Below are positions 292-20,473 of a DNA stretch of 45,389 nucleotides, piece by piece. Below the pieces are notes generated by a model. That model saw only the letters and a list, made by a program, of their open reading frames with translations, did no database searches and had not been told where the DNA came from. This DNA comes from Paraphysomonas bandaiensis (Eukaryota > Protista > Chrysophyceae): positions 1-45,389 of the forward strand of contig CBFFRP010000402.1 in the NCBI GenBank assembly GCA_965644295.1, read 5' to 3'. The translations under genes and the position numbers were made by a program. Position 1 is the stretch's first letter, and every line of letters starts with the position of its first letter.

Positions 292-3200
292 TGGTAGCGA
301 GCGAGGAGGAGAGAAGGAGGATAGAGGAGTAGTTCCTCAGTTCAACGAGACTAACGTTGAACAATGGATTGAGGACTTCGAGACATTCCTTGTGAGGTAG
401 GAACAAAGCGAGGTAGCGGTGGAACTGCCACCTAAGGAGAGCGACTTCGGGGAGCAGCCACTTACGTTGATGGAGGAGAAGGCGTACAGACAGGCTGTGA
501 AGAGGTATTGGAAGGCGAACGCCATAGCTTATTCTTACTGCAGGGATGCGGTGCAGCATTCCCCGAAAGCGCTGCGTAAATTCCATCTTACCCACAAAGC
601 GTTCAAGGCAGAAGGGAGTGGTGTAAACAGGTTCAAAACACATGTAATGATTGATGAGTTGAAGAAGTGTTTTGCTGGAGGGAAGCAAAATAGGATCAGT
701 GACCTCTTAACTCAATATGGTTCTTTCCGTATGCGTCCGGAGGAGACGGCGAAGGACTACGTACTACGGTTCGAACTACTGCTGAAGGAACTACAGGAGC
801 AGCAGCAGGATATCTCGGAGGTATCAAAAACAAGTCGACTACGAGAAGGCTTGCTCAATGAAGAGTATGCTCAACTGAGAGTTGGATTATACTTGATGGA
901 TGATGATGTTAATTATGTAACTGTATCACGTAAGATAGAAGGCTATGATGATACTATGGCTGGGAAGGAAGCGTTGGAGAAGAAGCGTAAAAGAGTGGAG
1001 GAGCTGAACCTGATAGACAGTAAGAAACGATATCGCAGAGAGAGGGATCATCGTAAGAAGAACAACGGTAAGAAGAAGCCGATGAAGAAGGATACAGAGA
1101 TTACAGGGCAGCGACCTGGAAGTGCCGAATATACTGGGTGCAGAAATTGTAAGTCAAAGGAACATCTTGCCATCGATTGTCCAGCATCGAAAAAGAAGTA
1201 CTCGCAAAGCAAGAGCAAGGCTGTGAGGTTTCAAGATGGAAGGAAACCAGACAAAAGACTACTTACAGTTGAAAACATCAGGCGTGGAGAGCCAGCGGAT
1301 TTGTCTGACGAAGACGAAGCAAATATGATCGAGCAACAGGAAGAGTATCACTTGTCATGTAATGTGTATGAGACGAATATATGCAGTAGTGTGCATGAGG
1401 ATATTCACTATACATACATTGATACCTGTTGTTCGTCATCAATGTTTTTGATAAATGATGTGAATATACTTGATAGTCATATGCACACATCAAAGGTTAT
1501 TAATGGTTCGAAAAAAGGGTCAGAGATATGCGTCACGAGTGTAGGTTCCCGTGGAGCATGGAAGAACATTGAGGTATCAAGTCAGATAAATCGGTGTCTT
1601 TGTTCTGGACGGAAGTTGAACGATATGGGATATCGATTTACTGTATGGTATGGTATACAGATATATGACAGAAATACGGATGAGCTGGTGTTGGAGGGAC
1701 CTATGAAGAATGGAATGACTGCTGTGCCAACACAGCAGTTATTGGAGCTTCCAGACGTATCGACATCCAGTGATTCAGAAGTAAATCTCAGTGACCGTAC
1801 GGGTGAGGATGAACTGGAGCTGTTACATAGGAGAGCGGGTCATTTTAACAAGCATGCGTTGGTAGAAGCCCACAAAAGAATGCTAATTATTGGGACTGGA
1901 CTGAAACGAAAACATCTCTCGAAACGTGTTTCCAAAGAACAGTGTCTATGTGATGTATGCGCCAGGGCGAAGATCACCAGAGTAAGTTTTCGGACAAAGG
2001 ATGAGGACTCCGTTCGTCCAAATTTCTCGGCCGATATAGCAGTATACTTAAATTGTCCAGCTCGAGGAGGGGAAATATATGTGCTCAAACTAACACACCA
2101 TGCCAGTCGGATGTTCTGGTCGGAAGGGCTTGTTCATAGGACTGGGTCATCGGTACTGCAGGTTTTCAAGAAGATTTTTGAAGGAGATGTGAAAAGGTAC
2201 AAATTAGAAATGCATCATTACCATGCAGATGGAGCAGGGGAGCTAATATGTGATGAGCTGCGACAATATCTTAGGTCACAGGGTTGCTATCAACATACGT
2301 GGAGCTCTACGGACTCTCCTGAGATGAACGCGATTGAGGAGCGGAAATTCAGGACCTGTGGTGAGATGACATTAGCGATGCTGATTCAGTCAGGATTGCC
2401 TTCACAGTTTTGGCTAGATGCCTACATGGCAGCCAGGTACATATTAATTCGATTGCCTACAAAGACAGCGAAGGGGTATATGTCCCCTCTTGAATTTTTG
2501 ACTGGTGAGGCTCCCAACCTGAAATATCTCAGAGTATGGGGGTGTCGTGCGTATGTCCTCACTACAAAGGCGGATCGACGGAAAGACTGGGACGACAAGG
2601 CCCTTATCGGATATCTGATAGGATATTCAGATGAAAAGGTAGGATATGATGTATATCTACCTGCGACTGATAGGGTCGTCACGTCGGTACATGTATTAAC
2701 TGATGAGTCCATACCGTCACGCTCGGAGAGCTATTTCGCTGAGATAGATGCTCTTCGAGTGAAGGAGGCCGAGAGACCGAAAATTGTGTCTGACTATGCG
2801 GGCTTAGAAGGTACATATCATATTGATGATGAGGATGGTCTTCTCTACAAGACCACGAGAGTAGTAGAACGAAAGGGGGTAATAGTAGCCTATCGATCTC
2901 TGGTAACTGCAGGTCGGAAGCATATCGAGCACCGGGTGCCGATTCACGTCGAGGACGTAGTGCGAATGACTGCAGAAACTCCCGGGAATACCGGATATAT
3001 AGGAAAGGGGGACGCCCTGAGTACTATGCCAGCCAGGGTGCTGGACCAGGGAAGACCTGGAGGGTTACAGGAGAGTCCTGACCCAACCTGTCAGGAGACA
3101 GCTGTGAGGTTGCAGACCTCTGAAGACTATGAGTCTGGGGTTGTGAGCGGGGCTCCTCCCACAACGCACGATGTGCGTGCTCAGGATGAGCAAGGTACGG

Positions 3201-4986
3201 GTTCTTATATACCTCGTCGACCGATTGAACTAGATGGTGATGGTCGGGTCCGACGCAAACGGCTGCAGCGGAGACTGGCAAACGCGTCAGTTTTAGGAGA
3301 GATTAATATGGTTGAAGTACCGGATGCGCATAATATTGATCTTAACCATGCAGAGACAGAAGATATCAAGATACCAAATTCATATGCCGAGGCAGAGAGA
3401 TCTCCACAGTATCAACAATGGAGAAAAGCTCGAATGGTGGAGAAGACATCATTGCTGAAAAGACGTGTCTTGAAGATCGTGAAAATTCCAAGCGGAGTGA
3501 AATTAGTTAGAGCGAAATATGTGCATACGGTGAAGCGAGACATACTAGGGAATATAGTAAAGTACAAGGCTCGGCTAGTGGCATTAGGAAATCTCCAAGA
3601 GAAGAAGGAGGAGGAGCCGTCCACTTTCGCTCCAGTGGTTAAGGGTATAACCATTAGACTAGTGTTAGCGATTGCGTTTATGTTACAGATGCATGTGCAT
3701 CAATTAGATGTATCATCCGCATTTTGCTATGCAGATCTGGAGGATGACGTGTATATGGCACCTCCACCAGATGAGGAATTACTAGCTGGATGGTGTTTTC
3801 AACTAATCAAGGCATTGTATGGACTGCGATCTTCACCGCGACAGTGGAATAAACATATTGACAAGTTTATTAAATCATTGCATTTTACTCCGTGTATTTT
3901 GGATACGTGTTTGTATATGCGATGGAGTAACGGAAAACTGCATTTATTATTGATATATGTTGATGATATCATAATTGCATCCGCTGATCTGACTTACTTG
4001 GAAAGCGTAAAGCGTAGGTTCTGTGAAACATTCGAGATGCATGATCTGGGAGTGTGTAAGCGATTTCTGAACATCAGGATAACCAGAGGAGAAAATTGGT
4101 ATATGTTAGATCAATCTGAGTATGCTAAGAATATTATCAAGAAATTCAGCTCAGTTATGGGAAAGAGTAGTAAGAATAAGGAGGCCCCACTACCTACTAA
4201 TGTTCAGGATCTGTTGGCAGAGGAACGTGAACTTACGGAGGAGCAGAAGCAGTGGGTTGACTCATTTCCGTATCGGCAAATTATTGGAGCAGTGTTGTAT
4301 CTAGCAATGCATACTAGACCTGATCTGGCTTATGCAGTGGGGTTATTGTCTCGATTTAGTAGTTGTCCGACATATGCATCGTGCAAACTGGCGATTCACT
4401 TATTGAAATATTTGCGTGGAACAATTGATGAGGGCATCAGATTCAGTGGGAGTGAGTTCGACTTACATGTGTTCAGTGATTCAGATTGGGCTGGTGATAG
4501 ACTGACTCGGCGATCGACAACAGGATACATTGTGTTCTTATGTGCAGGCGCATTGGCCTGGCAGTCTAAACTACAGACCACAGTTGCAACTTCGAGCATG
4601 GAATCTGAATATATGGCGGAGTATGCGGCTATGCAAGAACTGGTGTGGCTTCGGGGGTGTTCAAGGAGCTCGGGCTCTTAGTTGCGAAGCCGACTCCATT
4701 CTTTATGGATAGCAAGAGTGCGAAAGATCTCTCCGAGAATCCTGTGTATCATAAGAGGTCGAAGCATATAGACATCAAGTATCACTGGGTGAGAGAGCAT
4801 GTAAATGGAAAATTTCCTACGGCAAAGTTGATTCATGTGTCGACGGATGATATGGCGGCTGATATTTTCACGAAGGCATTGTCAACGAAACTTTTCAGTC
4901 GTCATGAGAAAACTATTACCGGGGTTAAGAGAAGTGTGTCAACCAGAGTTGAGGAGCAGCAGAAGAAGCGACCCCGAAGAGGTTAA
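275..4986 (+). CDS. Copia Gag-Pol polyprotein, interrupted by an in-frame TAG at 398-400 and a 1-nt frameshift at ~4653-4657
   Basis: ATG at 275 is in frame with ORF 419-4681. CCHC knuckle CRNCKSKEHLAIDC; protease YIDTCCS; LLHRRAGH...CDVC; integrase HADGAGE...EMNAIEER; LRVWGCRAYV; RT YKARLVA...LYGLRSSPRQW...IYVDDII; RNase H FSDSDWA...SSMESEY, continuing in 4645-4986 (MDSKSA, HKRSKHIDIKYHWVRE, ADIFTKAL). Confidence 0.95.
292..303 (+). promoter_or_regulatory. Primer binding site, probably for initiator tRNA-Met
   Basis: TGGTAGCGAG immediately after the LTR is complementary to a ...CUCGCUACCA tRNA 3' end, resembling the Ty1 iMet PBS TGGTAGCG. Confidence 0.75.
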
Positions 4987-15293: not shown

Positions 15294-16300
15294 CTAGATG
15301 TTATTTTCAATAACAGCTGCTTCAAGCATTTGCAAATGAGATATCATCACATCTACTAAATCATCGTAATCATCTGCTGCATCACTCGTAGTAAACTTAC
15401 TTGTATTCTTTATCTCTTAGCGTTTAATGAAAGATACACTTTGTATTGTTAAAAGGTAATGCTTGATTATTATGAAGAATAAGGCCTAATAGTATAATAG
15501 CAAGAAATGGGGTTCTTGAAATGAACACCAAGATTCGCATTGATTGAAATTTTGCTTATGTCGAAGAGGTTGTTTAGGAGTGTTACCTTGACATGAACCT
15601 CTGGCAGCAGAACACTGAGGGACATATTGGCCTGGACCCTACTATTTGCTTTGCATTGTCGATCAGCGTAGGAAAACATCTGCTCCGCTGATGTGCCAGT
15701 CAATGAACTTGCCGAATAACCAAACTCAATTGCTTCCATAAGACATGGAAAGTGTTGACATTACAGAGACTAGAAGCTCTGAATATTGTCTCCCACCAAA
15801 CCAGTGAGTATTGGCGTGCAATTCTGCCAGAAATAATCCACGGCACAGATCCTGCAACTCATTCAAATGTTTATCGGAGTTAAATCCTAATGACAACATG
15901 TTTTCCCTGAAGTCTATAGGATTTTCCACAAAGGTCTTTATCAATGCGTCCCTGAACTGTAAATAAGTCATGTCTCCGAAAGAAACGGCATCAGGACGAG
16001 GATTTGTGGGTACTGGTGTAACTGTTTTGGCTCCGAGCAAGGGATATTCTCATGAGACTTGAAAATGGCAGTGAGAAAAGAAAAAATCTCATTAAACGCA
16101 CAAAACTGTTTTCCATTATCGGAAAACGTAAGCAATTGTATACTATTAAGTTCAGAAAAGTCCATTAGACACTCTGAGATAGCAAGCAAAGCAGGCCATC
16201 TTCAACCTCTTCCATATTGAAGCAAAGAGCTCTTTGGCGATAATCCTTTGACACAGTGCAAGAAGAATGATACAGGAAGATGATCTAAAAAGATGGGGTG
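15294..16300 (-). pseudogene. Frameshifted ORF remnant, possibly a decayed hAT-like transposase
   Basis: Three overlapping ORFs in successive frames (15968-16189, 15726-16040, 15470-15739). SSLTGTSAEQMFSYA resembles the hAT dimerisation motif (TS..ER.FS). A further piece ends ...LEAAVIENNI* at ~15294. Confidence 0.4.
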
Positions 16301-17310
16301 ATATATATTATAAATTAGAGTCATGAATGGCCGAATGGAAAGATGTGACAAAGGCAACCTTTTGAGCCCATTTTGTCATTCTTTTCGGACAACTTCCGAC
16401 AGAGAAAAAAACATTCAAATGCTATGAAAATCAACGCACTCGCGATATATCGCGATCTCACTTCTGGACCAACAAGTTCTGAAAGAATGAGTTTGATCCA
16501 TTTTTTTGTTCATATGCTCTGCTGCAACTTTTTTTGGGAGAACTTTTCGTATGTATGTGTATGTATGTATACCACTCGCTCCGTTTTCCGGTGCCGCTGT
16601 TTTTTGAGGTGCCATTCTTTGGTGTGTTTTTTATCATCAGAATTGCAATCGGATCTTCATATAGATATACATGTATGTATATTCCTTTAAAATCATCATA
16701 TTTGTACACTCCTGTCATAATAAATACACCAATACATAAGAATGGATAGTTCCTGTGGTTAGTCACATCAACACTGATATCTGGTTGAAATATCAGATGA
16801 TGGGGAGTGAGAGGGATGTATTCCTGGTCCTCTGAACCTGGTGATGTACTCAGCGTTGTTGCCGCTTCCTGTAAGCTCATTGTTTGTATTTTTAGGGGAG
16901 ATAATCATTCAGCTGCTATGTAGACAATAGGGAGTCTTCCATGCGCAGACCTCACTTCATTATTAGTCTCATTTGTAGTGTATTTGCGGATATATATCGG
17001 ATCTATGCGATATATGGCTTCATTGTGTTTGTGTCATCTGCATTGAAGTGTAGGTATTTGAGTGGAAGAGTATATAAGTGTGTTATATTGTCTCTTGTTG
17101 CATTCTGCTGCTTGTTTACATGATTATAGATGCTAGTGCTACACATAACCTCGTTATTATTACGTATTCTCGTTACAATATTTTAAGACTGTGTTTTCAC
17201 GAATATTGAAGTCGTCATCTTATGGCATATCAGCATAGATTACCTATTCACCAGCTATACATGTATGTACTCAGTGTGTTCATGTTCATGCAACAGTTCA
17301 AGATCTAGAT

Positions 17311-18157
17311 ATGTGGTATATGTTCTGTGTCTTCGCTCTGTGTGCTTCATACAACATATATAGACCATGTATGTGGCATATGTTCTCTGTATGTGCTTCA
17401 TACAACACATTGAGACCATATATGTGGTATATGATCTGTATGTTCGCTGTGCTGTGCTGTAAGTACACAGCACACAGAGACTGTGTATGTGAAATGTGCT
17501 CTGTATATTCACTCTGCGTGCTTCATACAACACGCAAGAACTATATATGTGGTATATGATCTGTATGTTCGCTGTGCTGTGCTGTAAGTACACAGCACAC
17601 AGAGACTATCTGTATATTCACTCTGCGTGCTTCATACAACACGCAAGAACTATATATGTGGAATATGATGTGAATATATTACTCTGTGCTCTTCATGCAA
17701 CATACAGGGACTATGTATGTGTTATATGGTGCGTAGTATCACACTTTGCCCCTCATACAACACGCAAAGACTATATATGTGGTATATGGTATATGCGTTC
17801 ACTCTGTGCGCACCATGCGACACGCAGGGACTATATAAGTATTGTATGATGTATGTATTATGTATTCACTATGTGCTCTTCATGCAATACACAAGGGCTA
17901 TTTGAGTGCTATATGATGTGTATTTTTGCACTCTGTGCTACATATAACACAGAGAGACTATTGAAGTGTTTTTTTAGTGATCTGTATGTTTACTATGTGC
18001 TCTTCGTACAGTACACAAGCACTCAATGTATGGTATATGACGTGTAGTTTCGCTCTCTATGCTTCGTATAGTAGCCGGGGATTATATCAGTGTTATATGA
18101 TGTATGTGTTTACTCTCTATGCTTCGTATATCGTGTATAGTATATAGCACATAGGGA
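17311..18157 (+). repeat. Degenerate ~60-bp tandem array (about 14 units) in the left arm
   Basis: Recurring ATGTGGTATATG...CTCTG(T/C)GTGCTTCATACAACAC...GACTATAT units. Confidence 0.85.
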
Positions 18158-18677
18158 CTATGTAGGTAGTAGGCGCAGCACTTTGCAGTTGTATATAGCA
18201 CTGGGTTTATATGTTTACTCTGTAAACTCCGTCGAGTAGAATTTTAATAACAGTGGAAAATGACATTAAATTGTCATATTTTATTGTGTAGTATTAGTAC
18301 TTAGAGTGCTACTGCCAACTGTACACGATGGGATAGGAAGCCAGATTAGTACAATAGTAAAGTACTTATGTAAATAGTAAACCCTTAAAGCAAAAAATAC
18401 GTTATCTATTAAAAACTAAAAACAAGCGTGCACTGTGGATTACAGTGTTCAAATTAAAAAATCAGCAACATCAAACTTAACCATACGCTATGCTAGCTAC
18501 AACCATATGCTACGCTACTTCCATCGCCCCATTGTCATCAAGTGTTCTTAGGGCCTCGATTGCTTTATCAAGTCTGTACTGACGCTTCTCGGCGATGGAC
18601 ATTCCTCGTAACAATACTTTTTCTTCGTCTCTCTTTTCTTTGGCCTCAGCCTTGGCTGTCAGCCTATCCAAGCTATA

Positions 18678-19524
18678 TCCCTATGTACTATATACTATAC
18701 ACGATATACGAAGCATAGAGAGTAAACACATACATCATATAACACTGATATAATCCCCGGCTACTATACGAAGCATAGAGAGCGAAACTACACGTCATAT
18801 ACCATACATTGAGTGCTTGTGTACTGTACGAAGAGCACATAGTAAACATACAGATCACTAAAAAAACACTTCAATAGTCTCTCTGTGTTATATGTAGCAC
18901 AGAGTGCAAAAATACACATCATATAGCACTCAAATAGCCCTTGTGTATTGCATGAAGAGCACATAGTGAATACATAATACATACATCATACAATACTTAT
19001 ATAGTCCCTGCGTGTCGCATGGTGCGCACAGAGTGAACGCATATACCATATACCACATATATAGTCTTTGCGTGTTGTATGAGGGGCAAAGTGTGATACT
19101 ACGCACCATATAACACATACATAGTCCCTGTATGTTGCATGAAGAGCACAGAGTAATATATTCACATCATATTCCACATATATAGTTCTTGCGTGTTGTA
19201 TGAAGCACGCAGAGTGAATATACAGATAGTCTCTGTGTGCTGTGTACTTACAGCACAGCACAGCGAACATACAGATCATATACCACATATATAGTTCTTG
19301 CGTGTTGTATGAAGCACGCAGAGTGAATATACAGAGCACATTTCACATACACAGTCTCTGTGTGCTGTGTACTTACAGCACAGCACAGCGAACATACAGA
19401 TCATATACCACATATATGGTCTCAATGTGTTGTATGAAGCACATACAGAGAACATATGCCACATACATGGTCTATATATGTTGTATGAAGCACACAGAGC
19501 GAAGACACAGAACATATACCACAT
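18678..19524 (-). repeat. Mirror copy of the ~60-bp tandem array in the right arm
   Basis: Reverse complement of 17311-18157. Confidence 0.85.
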
Positions 19525-20473
19525 ATCTAGATCTTGAACTGTTGCATGAACATGAACACACTGAGTACATACATGTATAGCTGGTGAATAGGTAATCTAT
19601 GCTGATATGCCATAAGATGACGACTTCAATATTCGTGAAAACACAGTCTTAAAATATTGTAACGAGAATACGTAATAATAACGAGGTTATGTGTAGCACT
19701 AGCATCTATAATCATGTAAACAAGCAGCAGAATGCAACAAGAGACAATATAACACACTTATATACTCTTCCACTCAAATACCTACACTTCAATGCAGATG
19801 ACACAAACACAATGAAGCCATATATCGCATAGATCCGATATATATCCGCAAATACACTACAAATGAGACTAATAATGAAGTGAGGTCTGCGCATGGAAGA
19901 CTCCCTATTGTCTACATAGCAGCTGAATGATTATCTCCCCTAAAAATACAAACAATGAGCTTACAGGAAGCGGCAACAACGCTGAGTACATCACCAGGTT
20001 CAGAGGACCAGGAATACATCCCTCTCACTCCCCATCATCTGATATTTCAACCAGATATCAGTGTTGATGTGACTAACCACAGGAACTATCCATTCTTATG
20101 TATTGGTGTATTTATTATGACAGGAGTGTACAAATATGATGATTTTAAAGGAATATACATACATGTATATCTATATGAAGATCCGATTGCAATTCTGATG
20201 ATAAAAAACACACCAAAGAATGGCACCTCAAAAAACAGCGGCACCGGAAAACGGAGCGAGTGGTATATGTATGTACGTATGTATCGTATAGATGTCTGTG
20301 TCTGTGTTGTATGTGGGTGGGTCTTGTGGTTTCTCTCAATGCACAGGCTCATACATAAATAGCCACCAGAAGCCACAAGACTATACAGTAATATCTCCAC
20401 TCTGTTGGTTGGTTGTTGTGAGTGTTTCATTATCGTGATAGTGACATATGTTTGTAGATATAAGCATATCATA

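Follow-up and report, generated by a model that had tools for sequence, protein, structure and literature searches.

The foldback elements of Drosophila, FB and Galileo, are non-autonomous, with kilobase arms that contain internal tandem arrays, flank a short centre and evolve in concert. Galileo belongs to the P superfamily. The maize locus Mu killer, which occurs once and does not move, duplicates part of MuDR in inverted form, and silencing by it is proven. Elements of the pogo/Tigger type (Pfam DDE_1) have simple terminal inverted repeats (TIRs) and a single open reading frame (ORF) whose product has two helix-turn-helix domains and then an RNase-H-like domain with three catalytic aspartates (DDD). 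Tc4 of Caenorhabditis, a TcMar element of the DDD type, cuts C|TNA|G and duplicates 3 bp (PMC11071193), while Sola elements have a DDD transposase, a 4-bp duplication and inverted repeats that range from 11 bp to 1124 bp (PMC10741241, PMC3627910, PMC5751038). The DNA considered here, hereafter the window, is a stretch of 45,389 nucleotides from the chrysophyte Paraphysomonas bandaiensis (assembly GCA_965644295.1, contig CBFFRP010000402.1, here C402). Its positions 16572-20263 are very probably a young non-autonomous foldback of a cut-and-paste transposon, the parent of which is pogo-related, makes a 4-bp target site duplication (TSD) and is present on another contig, C428, of the same genome.

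The element proper is 3692 bp long and has the tip sequence CCACTCGCTCCGTTTT at both ends. Gapped self-BLAST gives inverted arms of 1590 nt (16572-18161) and 1589 nt (18675-20263) that are 99.87% identical, their only differences being a mismatch and an indel at the inner edge, and that enclose a loop of 513 nt. An ungapped repeat search yields a single inverted pair of 1599 nt with a spacing of 520 nt, the extra 9-13 nt at its outer ends being (TATG)n microsatellite that pairs only in part. The inner arrays have periods of 51-65 bp in Tandem Repeats Finder (TRF), with 68-86% matches, at 17309-17837 and in mirror image at 18896-19530. The original prediction, made from the letters of the window, was of near-identical inverted arms with inner arrays of ~60 bp, and so they have proved. 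Its interval of 16568-20267 delimits a real structure but takes in both copies of the TATA target duplication, and its single mismatch near the inner edge was found but is accompanied by the indel, with its 520-bp loop shortening to 513 nt once gaps are allowed. The features are:

16568-16571, no strand: left TSD copy, TATA, identical to 20264-20267; 10/10 full copies have matching 4-bp flanks, with a sequence that differs by locus.
16572-16631, plus strand: left TIR proper, ~60 bp, tip CCACTCGCTCCG (exact at 22 places in the genome), likely the end for transposase binding and cleavage; the outer 60 bp alone are inverted-repeated in the C428 copy (57/60).
16572-18161, plus strand: left arm, colinear with C428 copy bases 1 to ~2002, with 730 nt of unique subterminal sequence and then a tandem array.
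17300-18160, plus strand: degenerate tandem array of ~60-bp units in the left arm, mirrored at 18676-19536 (TRF and repeat search); the number of units varies between subfamilies.
18162-18674, plus strand: loop, made up of the 3′ untranslated stretch of the parent and the 3′ end of its transposase gene, colinear with ~2003-2516 of the C428 copy at 93-98% identity.
18510-18680, minus strand: what is left of the transposase ORF, its final 53-56 codons with the stop (coiled-coil tail), 96% identical to residues 610-663 of the C428 protein.
18675-20263, minus strand: right arm, an inverted copy of the left arm; the loop junction at 18674/18675 has the same sequence in 7/7 copies where it was located.
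20204-20263, minus strand: right TIR proper, a copy of the left end with the same sequence.
20264-20267, no strand: right TSD copy, TATA, matching the left flank.

The genome searched is an assembly of 62.6 Mb in 669 contigs. Within it, 46 places match the first 729 nt of the arm, ten of them forming full inverted pairs on ten different contigs, and the element has about 13 copies in total, with truncated or partial ones on C474 and C370 in the contig pieces examined; older relatives of the arm sequence, at 73-85% identity, are also present. Other copies with the same tips had been anticipated, and the 18-nt tip occurs exactly at 22 places; single-copy tips, which would have pointed to a local inverted duplication, are not what the ~13 copies display. 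The copy on C92 is 100% identical to that in the window across all 3692 bp, and the copy on C431 has arms identical to those in the window, with a centre that matches in the opposite orientation only; both have different flanks. These three identical copies imply very recent transposition. Perfect 4-bp direct duplications flank all ten full copies (TATA four times, TACA twice, and TGTA, AGCA, TATT and AATT), with the consensus T-R-Y-A, a degenerate palindrome, and several of the insertions lie within or adjoin (TATG)n microsatellites. Since AGCA, TATT and AATT are among them, the duplications are neither TA duplications nor extensions of the inverted repeat. The TA target originally proposed has to be given up, 'TA|CCAC' being just the inner half of TATA, and given the 4-bp duplication the argument from TA target and tip motif to Stowaway/mariner relationship drew on the wrong evidence. 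The palindrome in the window is a real, mobile and recently transposed foldback.

Several minor features accompany these copies. The flank of the C431 copy (L009:400-1000) has units of ~160-190 bp to which sequences at hundreds of places in the genome are 84-93% identical (942 first-look candidates) and which are probably an abundant family of MITEs (miniature inverted-repeat transposable elements). To the right of both the C92 copy and the C428 parent the duplication TACA is followed by GCTG, giving TACAGCTG, although the two loci have nothing else in common; a target preference that extends beyond the 4 bp may be the reason, or coincidence. At C239:183850-183940 a fragment of ~90 bp has tip bases 3-40 and, immediately after them, bases 48-100 in inverted orientation; it could be what remains of a miniature hairpin made from the same end. 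At C238:240823-249534 an older arm relative forms an inverted pair of 290 bp (95% identity) whose members lie 8.4 kb apart, the interval holding no long ORF; it may be a larger, degenerate element from a sister family.

The origin of the foldback can be traced by way of its loop. A small ORF there was found in every foldback copy, and on C428 it ends a 669-codon open frame. At C428:11465-15968 lies a copy of 4504 bp flanked by the duplication TACA, with the same left end as the foldbacks, a right end that repeats just 60 bp of it in inverted form (57/60 matches), and an intact 663-codon ORF on the minus strand, 3′ to which are ~730 nt of unique sequence and a ~60-bp tandem array. This copy, likely the autonomous parent, is a transposase-encoding relative of the kind that the original prediction proposed to look for. 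Foldback bases 1-2104 are colinear with parent bases 1-2516 and the remainder is inverted parent sequence, from 1 to ~2002. Because the junction is common to all seven copies where it was located, spanning three subfamilies, the rearrangement happened once and its product then spread. The two sequences joined have just 2-3 nt in common at the junction, and the rearrangement removed all of the gene save its last ~55 codons and gave the element two identical left ends. Judged by this sequence comparison, the 1.59-kb arms are a secondary rearrangement of single origin in a short-TIR element and no trait of the family. FB and Galileo differ in this respect, and also in their duplications of 7-9 bp and in belonging to other transposase groups.

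That the arms are now so alike is a separate matter. In an alignment of the unique outer 740 nt of all 20 arms together with the parent, the junction-sharing copies have eleven variable sites at which an element or subfamily has the same derived base in its two arms (at column 430 and at column 35 this is so in one copy each, C75 and C474 respectively), and five differences limited to one arm. Given a single origin of the foldback, the paired changes reflect conversion, either from arm to arm or from another copy into both arms. All copies have the inner-edge mismatch in common, so that it is old and outside the reach of conversion. Where the original prediction offered recent transposition or arm conversion, the identical copies and the paired substitutions speak for both.

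The protein encoded on C428 has an insertion of 17 residues with respect to ten homologues, corresponding to a 51-nt DNA segment that starts with GT and ends with AG. The segment would be a short in-frame intron, in which case the protein has ~646 amino acids. In an AlphaFold model (11-sequence alignment, mean predicted local distance difference test score 75.5) two bundles of three helices each accompany an RNase-H-like domain and a long coiled-coil tail, and the protein is predicted to have two helix-turn-helix domains at its N terminus, a Tc1/mariner/pogo-type catalytic domain that is RNase-H-like, and a coiled-coil tail; a Mos1/Sleeping Beauty-type domain after paired helix-turn-helix domains is the fold expected of the IS630-Tc1-mariner class. 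Across 56 sequences N186, D347-G-E and K374 are invariant, and D188, D387, F392 and K396 nearly so, which makes D188/D347/D387 a candidate catalytic triad of the form DD40D.

In structural comparison of the model, Foldseek returned Mos1 chains alone at E<0.001 (Mos1 E 4e-5), and with VIA-align Mos1, Metnase and Sleeping Beauty (2f7t, 3k9j and 5cr4) had Z scores of 10.9-11.1 for their catalytic domains, covering 192-201 of ~200-224 residues with a root-mean-square deviation of 3.4-3.9 over query residues ~150-480; the alignment to full-length Mos1 begins at residue 20. Next come retroviral integrases (5-6), Tn5 and ISCth4, a fold class at Z ~6. The nearest clusters in the ESM Atlas are DDE_1 (pogo/Tigger) ones, its unnamed clusters providing weak bacterial leads only, and no bacterial relatives emerged from a pattern scan of genome contigs. 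At the sequence level a PDB search with the C428 protein gave no match, and the family profile had only weak helix-turn-helix matches among PDB sequences (Cgl2762, Brinker and CENP-B; E>=0.03). With a DDE_1 alignment of 14 sequences, seeded from a genuine pogo-like ORF of the same genome, HHalign aligned the 56-member family over 316 columns at a probability of 93.5% and E 2.3e-7, in a register that brings together the three acidic motifs: N.DATQ with NvDETG, CDGE with LLMD...SH, and Q..D with QPMD. The pogo/Tigger motifs N.D[AE]T, the D after strand 4 and Q..D align with the C428 family in this comparison.

By fold and profile, then, the enzyme appears to be a distant relative of pogo within the IS630-Tc1-mariner class, one that departs from the TA rule of that class. 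It differs from pogo/Tigger in duplicating 4 bp of T-R-Y-A-like sequence instead of TA, in a D-D spacing of 40 as against 32 in the pogo set used, in its long coiled-coil tail, in tips that start with CC and in going undetected by Pfam DDE_1. It also has many relatives. A word-index search found ten homologues, nine of them without a source name or hypothetical; one member of a single cluster bears the label 'transposase-like protein'. In an exhaustive search with the family profile, 2554 representatives of clusters reached E<=0.001, of which 628 reached E<=1e-30, and the family thereby comprises at least 2554 protein clusters at 50% identity. Ten of these representatives had only sub-threshold helix-turn-helix matches in Pfam. 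Three further lineages, two in this genome and one from a metagenome, have perfect 4-bp duplications:

C523: 46% identity to the C428 protein; duplication GACT; tip CCACAGGG.
C406, with a 697-codon ORF and no Pfam match: 28% identity to the C428 protein; duplication TATT; tip CCTACAAACC.
Metagenome contig VFQO010006185: 28% identity to the C428 protein; duplication TTCT; tip CCACTGCG.

All three tips start with CC, as in the foldback family. In another metagenome element the duplication is imperfect (AATT versus ATTA), so that perfect 4-bp duplications flank 13 of 14 elements from four lineages, and the TA duplication that characterizes IS630-Tc1-mariner elements is not what was found. With 4-bp duplications in these further lineages, the length goes with the transposase family, not with the foldback as such. 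Tc4 is likened here by description: it belongs to the same broad superfamily, has a non-TA duplication and is a precedent for a changed stagger, but its 3 bp are in a strict CTNAG target and it is confined to ecdysozoans. The parent family appears to be undescribed, judged from the searchable literature and without comparison to Repbase or Dfam; a literature search for pogo-like elements that duplicate 4 bp, diatoms included, brought up nothing of relevance. The original prediction of an undescribed long-TIR family of Tc1/mariner type is upheld as to mobility, lack of a description in the literature searched and the Tc1/mariner/pogo fold, but not as to the long TIRs, the ends of the parent being ~60 bp.

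At the right end of the C523 element (L045:7464-7486) the terminal 17 nt are tandemly duplicated, so that the tip motif is present twice; GACT flanks the outer copy and not the inner one.

Other described groups were considered for membership and rejected. For Foldback/Galileo, the 4-bp duplication is at odds with membership and the P element transposase 6p5a has Z 5.4. None of the 14 duplications (0/14) is the TTAA of piggyBac, there is no Pfam match and piggyBat 9c0f has Z 5.1. Ginger1/2 fit in duplication length alone, with no rve match and with retroviral integrases at Z 5-6 versus 11 for Mos1. A Stowaway-type MITE would be shorter than 600 bp, with TA and tips like CTCCCTCCGT, whereas the element in the window has 3692 bp, a 4-bp duplication and the tip CCACTCGCTCCG.

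The reading of the window element as a young foldback of a pogo-related parent is carried by copy number, duplications, colinearity with the parent, the common junction, paired substitutions, and homology by fold and profile. Several points weigh against it. A fourth foldback subfamily, on C357 and C24, has a different centre, ~830 bp of unrelated DNA (L019:2741-3571 in C357, the same in C24) with a 106-codon ORF (L019:2954-3274) that starts with an AT-hook-like motif, RKRGRPR; this centre may be a captured host fragment or a second gene, and because of it the scheme of a single origin does not fit every copy. There is one intact transposase copy in the genome. No empty-site allele, which the original prediction would have with a single TA, is present in the assembly for the flanks of the window and C431 copies, flanks that are themselves repeats. 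Pfam hmmscan of the C428 protein gave no match at E<=10, DDE_1 and rve included, and HHalign against a shallow pogo alignment of four sequences found the same register at a probability of just 12%, so the pogo link rests on one deeper profile comparison together with the predicted fold. The Tc1/mariner/pogo families checked duplicate TA, or 3 bp in Tc4, and never 4 bp. Catalysis, including excision and the activity of the transposase, mobilization in trans and the way in which the foldback formed are all deduced from sequence.

Perfect long palindromes are known from long-read libraries, and with arms as nearly identical as those in the window an assembly artefact (a chimeric foldback read) or a one-off, immobile local inverted duplication might be suspected. 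The same structure recurs in ten contigs with different flanks and its own 4-bp duplication in each, which disposes of artefact and local duplication, and subfamilies differ in substitutions and repeat numbers; the chance that either accounts for the palindrome is negligible. Membership of the Sola superfamily, in place of a relationship to pogo and Tc1-mariner, merits more thought, though it is distinctly improbable. The Sola definition fits the C428 family well in that a DDD transposase, 4-bp AT-rich duplications, repeats of variable to very great length (possibly >1 kb), the lack of a Pfam model and protist hosts are common to both (PMC10741241, PMC3627910, PMC5751038), and the combination of 4-bp duplication and DDD transposase was found here. 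Fold and profile instead tie the transposase to pogo and Mos1, and Sola is in a different RNase-H clade from Mariner and Tigger (Majorek et al., PMC3985635). Two Sola2 transposases (PMC3627910, supplement 3) have the motifs DFKEN / W.D.A.HFKS / YHGKS..D.HF and a cysteine-rich region before the first D, whereas the C428 family, compared by eye only, has N.DATQF / CDGE / Q..D..FK and two helix-turn-helix domains. Sola1 tips (GGACCG...) and the target AWWT are also unlike those of the C428 family (PMC3845634). The differences in catalytic motifs, N-terminal region and tips are thus from Sola2 and Sola1 examples by description, Sola being reported as unlike known transposases.

A further suggestion, which would add to the foldback reading instead of replacing it, is that the element also acts as a hairpin in the manner of Mu killer, read-through giving a 1.6-kb double-stranded RNA from which small RNAs silence the lone autonomous copy via its 3′ region. 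The arms correspond to the region directly downstream of the transposase stop codon of the parent and the loop to the 3′ end of the gene, the genome encodes at least two Piwi-domain (Argonaute) loci, and one intact autonomous copy contrasts with ~12 foldback copies. As in Mu killer, one end of an autonomous transposon is duplicated in inverted form with potential for hairpin RNA against it; the window foldback, however, keeps both ends and transposes, and silencing would here be deduced from structure. The three identical copies show that the transposase was recently active despite the foldbacks. Silencing of this kind is rather unlikely. The original prediction held that the palindrome could extrude a cruciform or yield a double-stranded RNA hairpin, and both are conjectural. 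A broader proposal, tentative and somewhat doubtful, would have the parent represent an unnamed sister group of pogo that ranks as a superfamily within the Tc1/mariner fold class, is abundant, with at least 2554 clusters, in marine microbial eukaryotes and has a stagger of 4 nt versus 2 nt, the foldback both parasitizing the lone autonomous copy and, via hairpin RNA, restraining it.

On the preferred reading, that of a non-autonomous foldback with its parent on C428, the C428 transposase would bind the 60-bp ends of the foldback in trans and excise the element, and integration would follow a cut with a 4-nt stagger at sites resembling T-R-Y-A, frequently ones within (TATG)n microsatellites. 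Foldback copies would present this transposase with two perfect left ends and so be mobilized in trans. The foldback itself was probably formed by a strand or template switch, or by fold-back repair, during gap repair or replication, and intramolecular conversion would then keep the two arms alike.

Duplication length is used to define DNA-transposon superfamilies, and a large clade with a mariner/pogo fold that is invisible to Pfam and duplicates 4 bp would blur the line between Tc1/mariner and 'Sola-like' elements. The family would also fill a gap in the annotation of protist genomes, its proteins that were looked up being without a family name or a significant Pfam match, and it is a natural case in which to ask how active-site spacing sets the stagger of target cutting. 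With its single origin, identified parent, three identical recent insertions and clear paired substitutions, the foldback is a clean system for study, suited to work on arm-to-arm conversion and on possible self-silencing by hairpin RNA in a marine microbial eukaryote that is represented in the Marine Microbial Eukaryote Transcriptome Sequencing Project (MMETSP), where a host protein encoded in the window is present.

The rest of the window is eukaryotic in character and encodes a poly(A) polymerase, SAPS and G-patch proteins and a Ty1/copia polyprotein. The ORF for the last of these, near the window start, is an apparently intact frame of 1420 codons (419-4681, plus strand) whose product has RVT_2 and retroviral SH3-like domains. 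To the left of the foldback, the flank at 15900-16478 belongs to another repeat family, of at least eight copies, and ends ~90 bp before the insertion site; a 100% identical copy of it is present at C159:61541-62119, with others at 86-97%.

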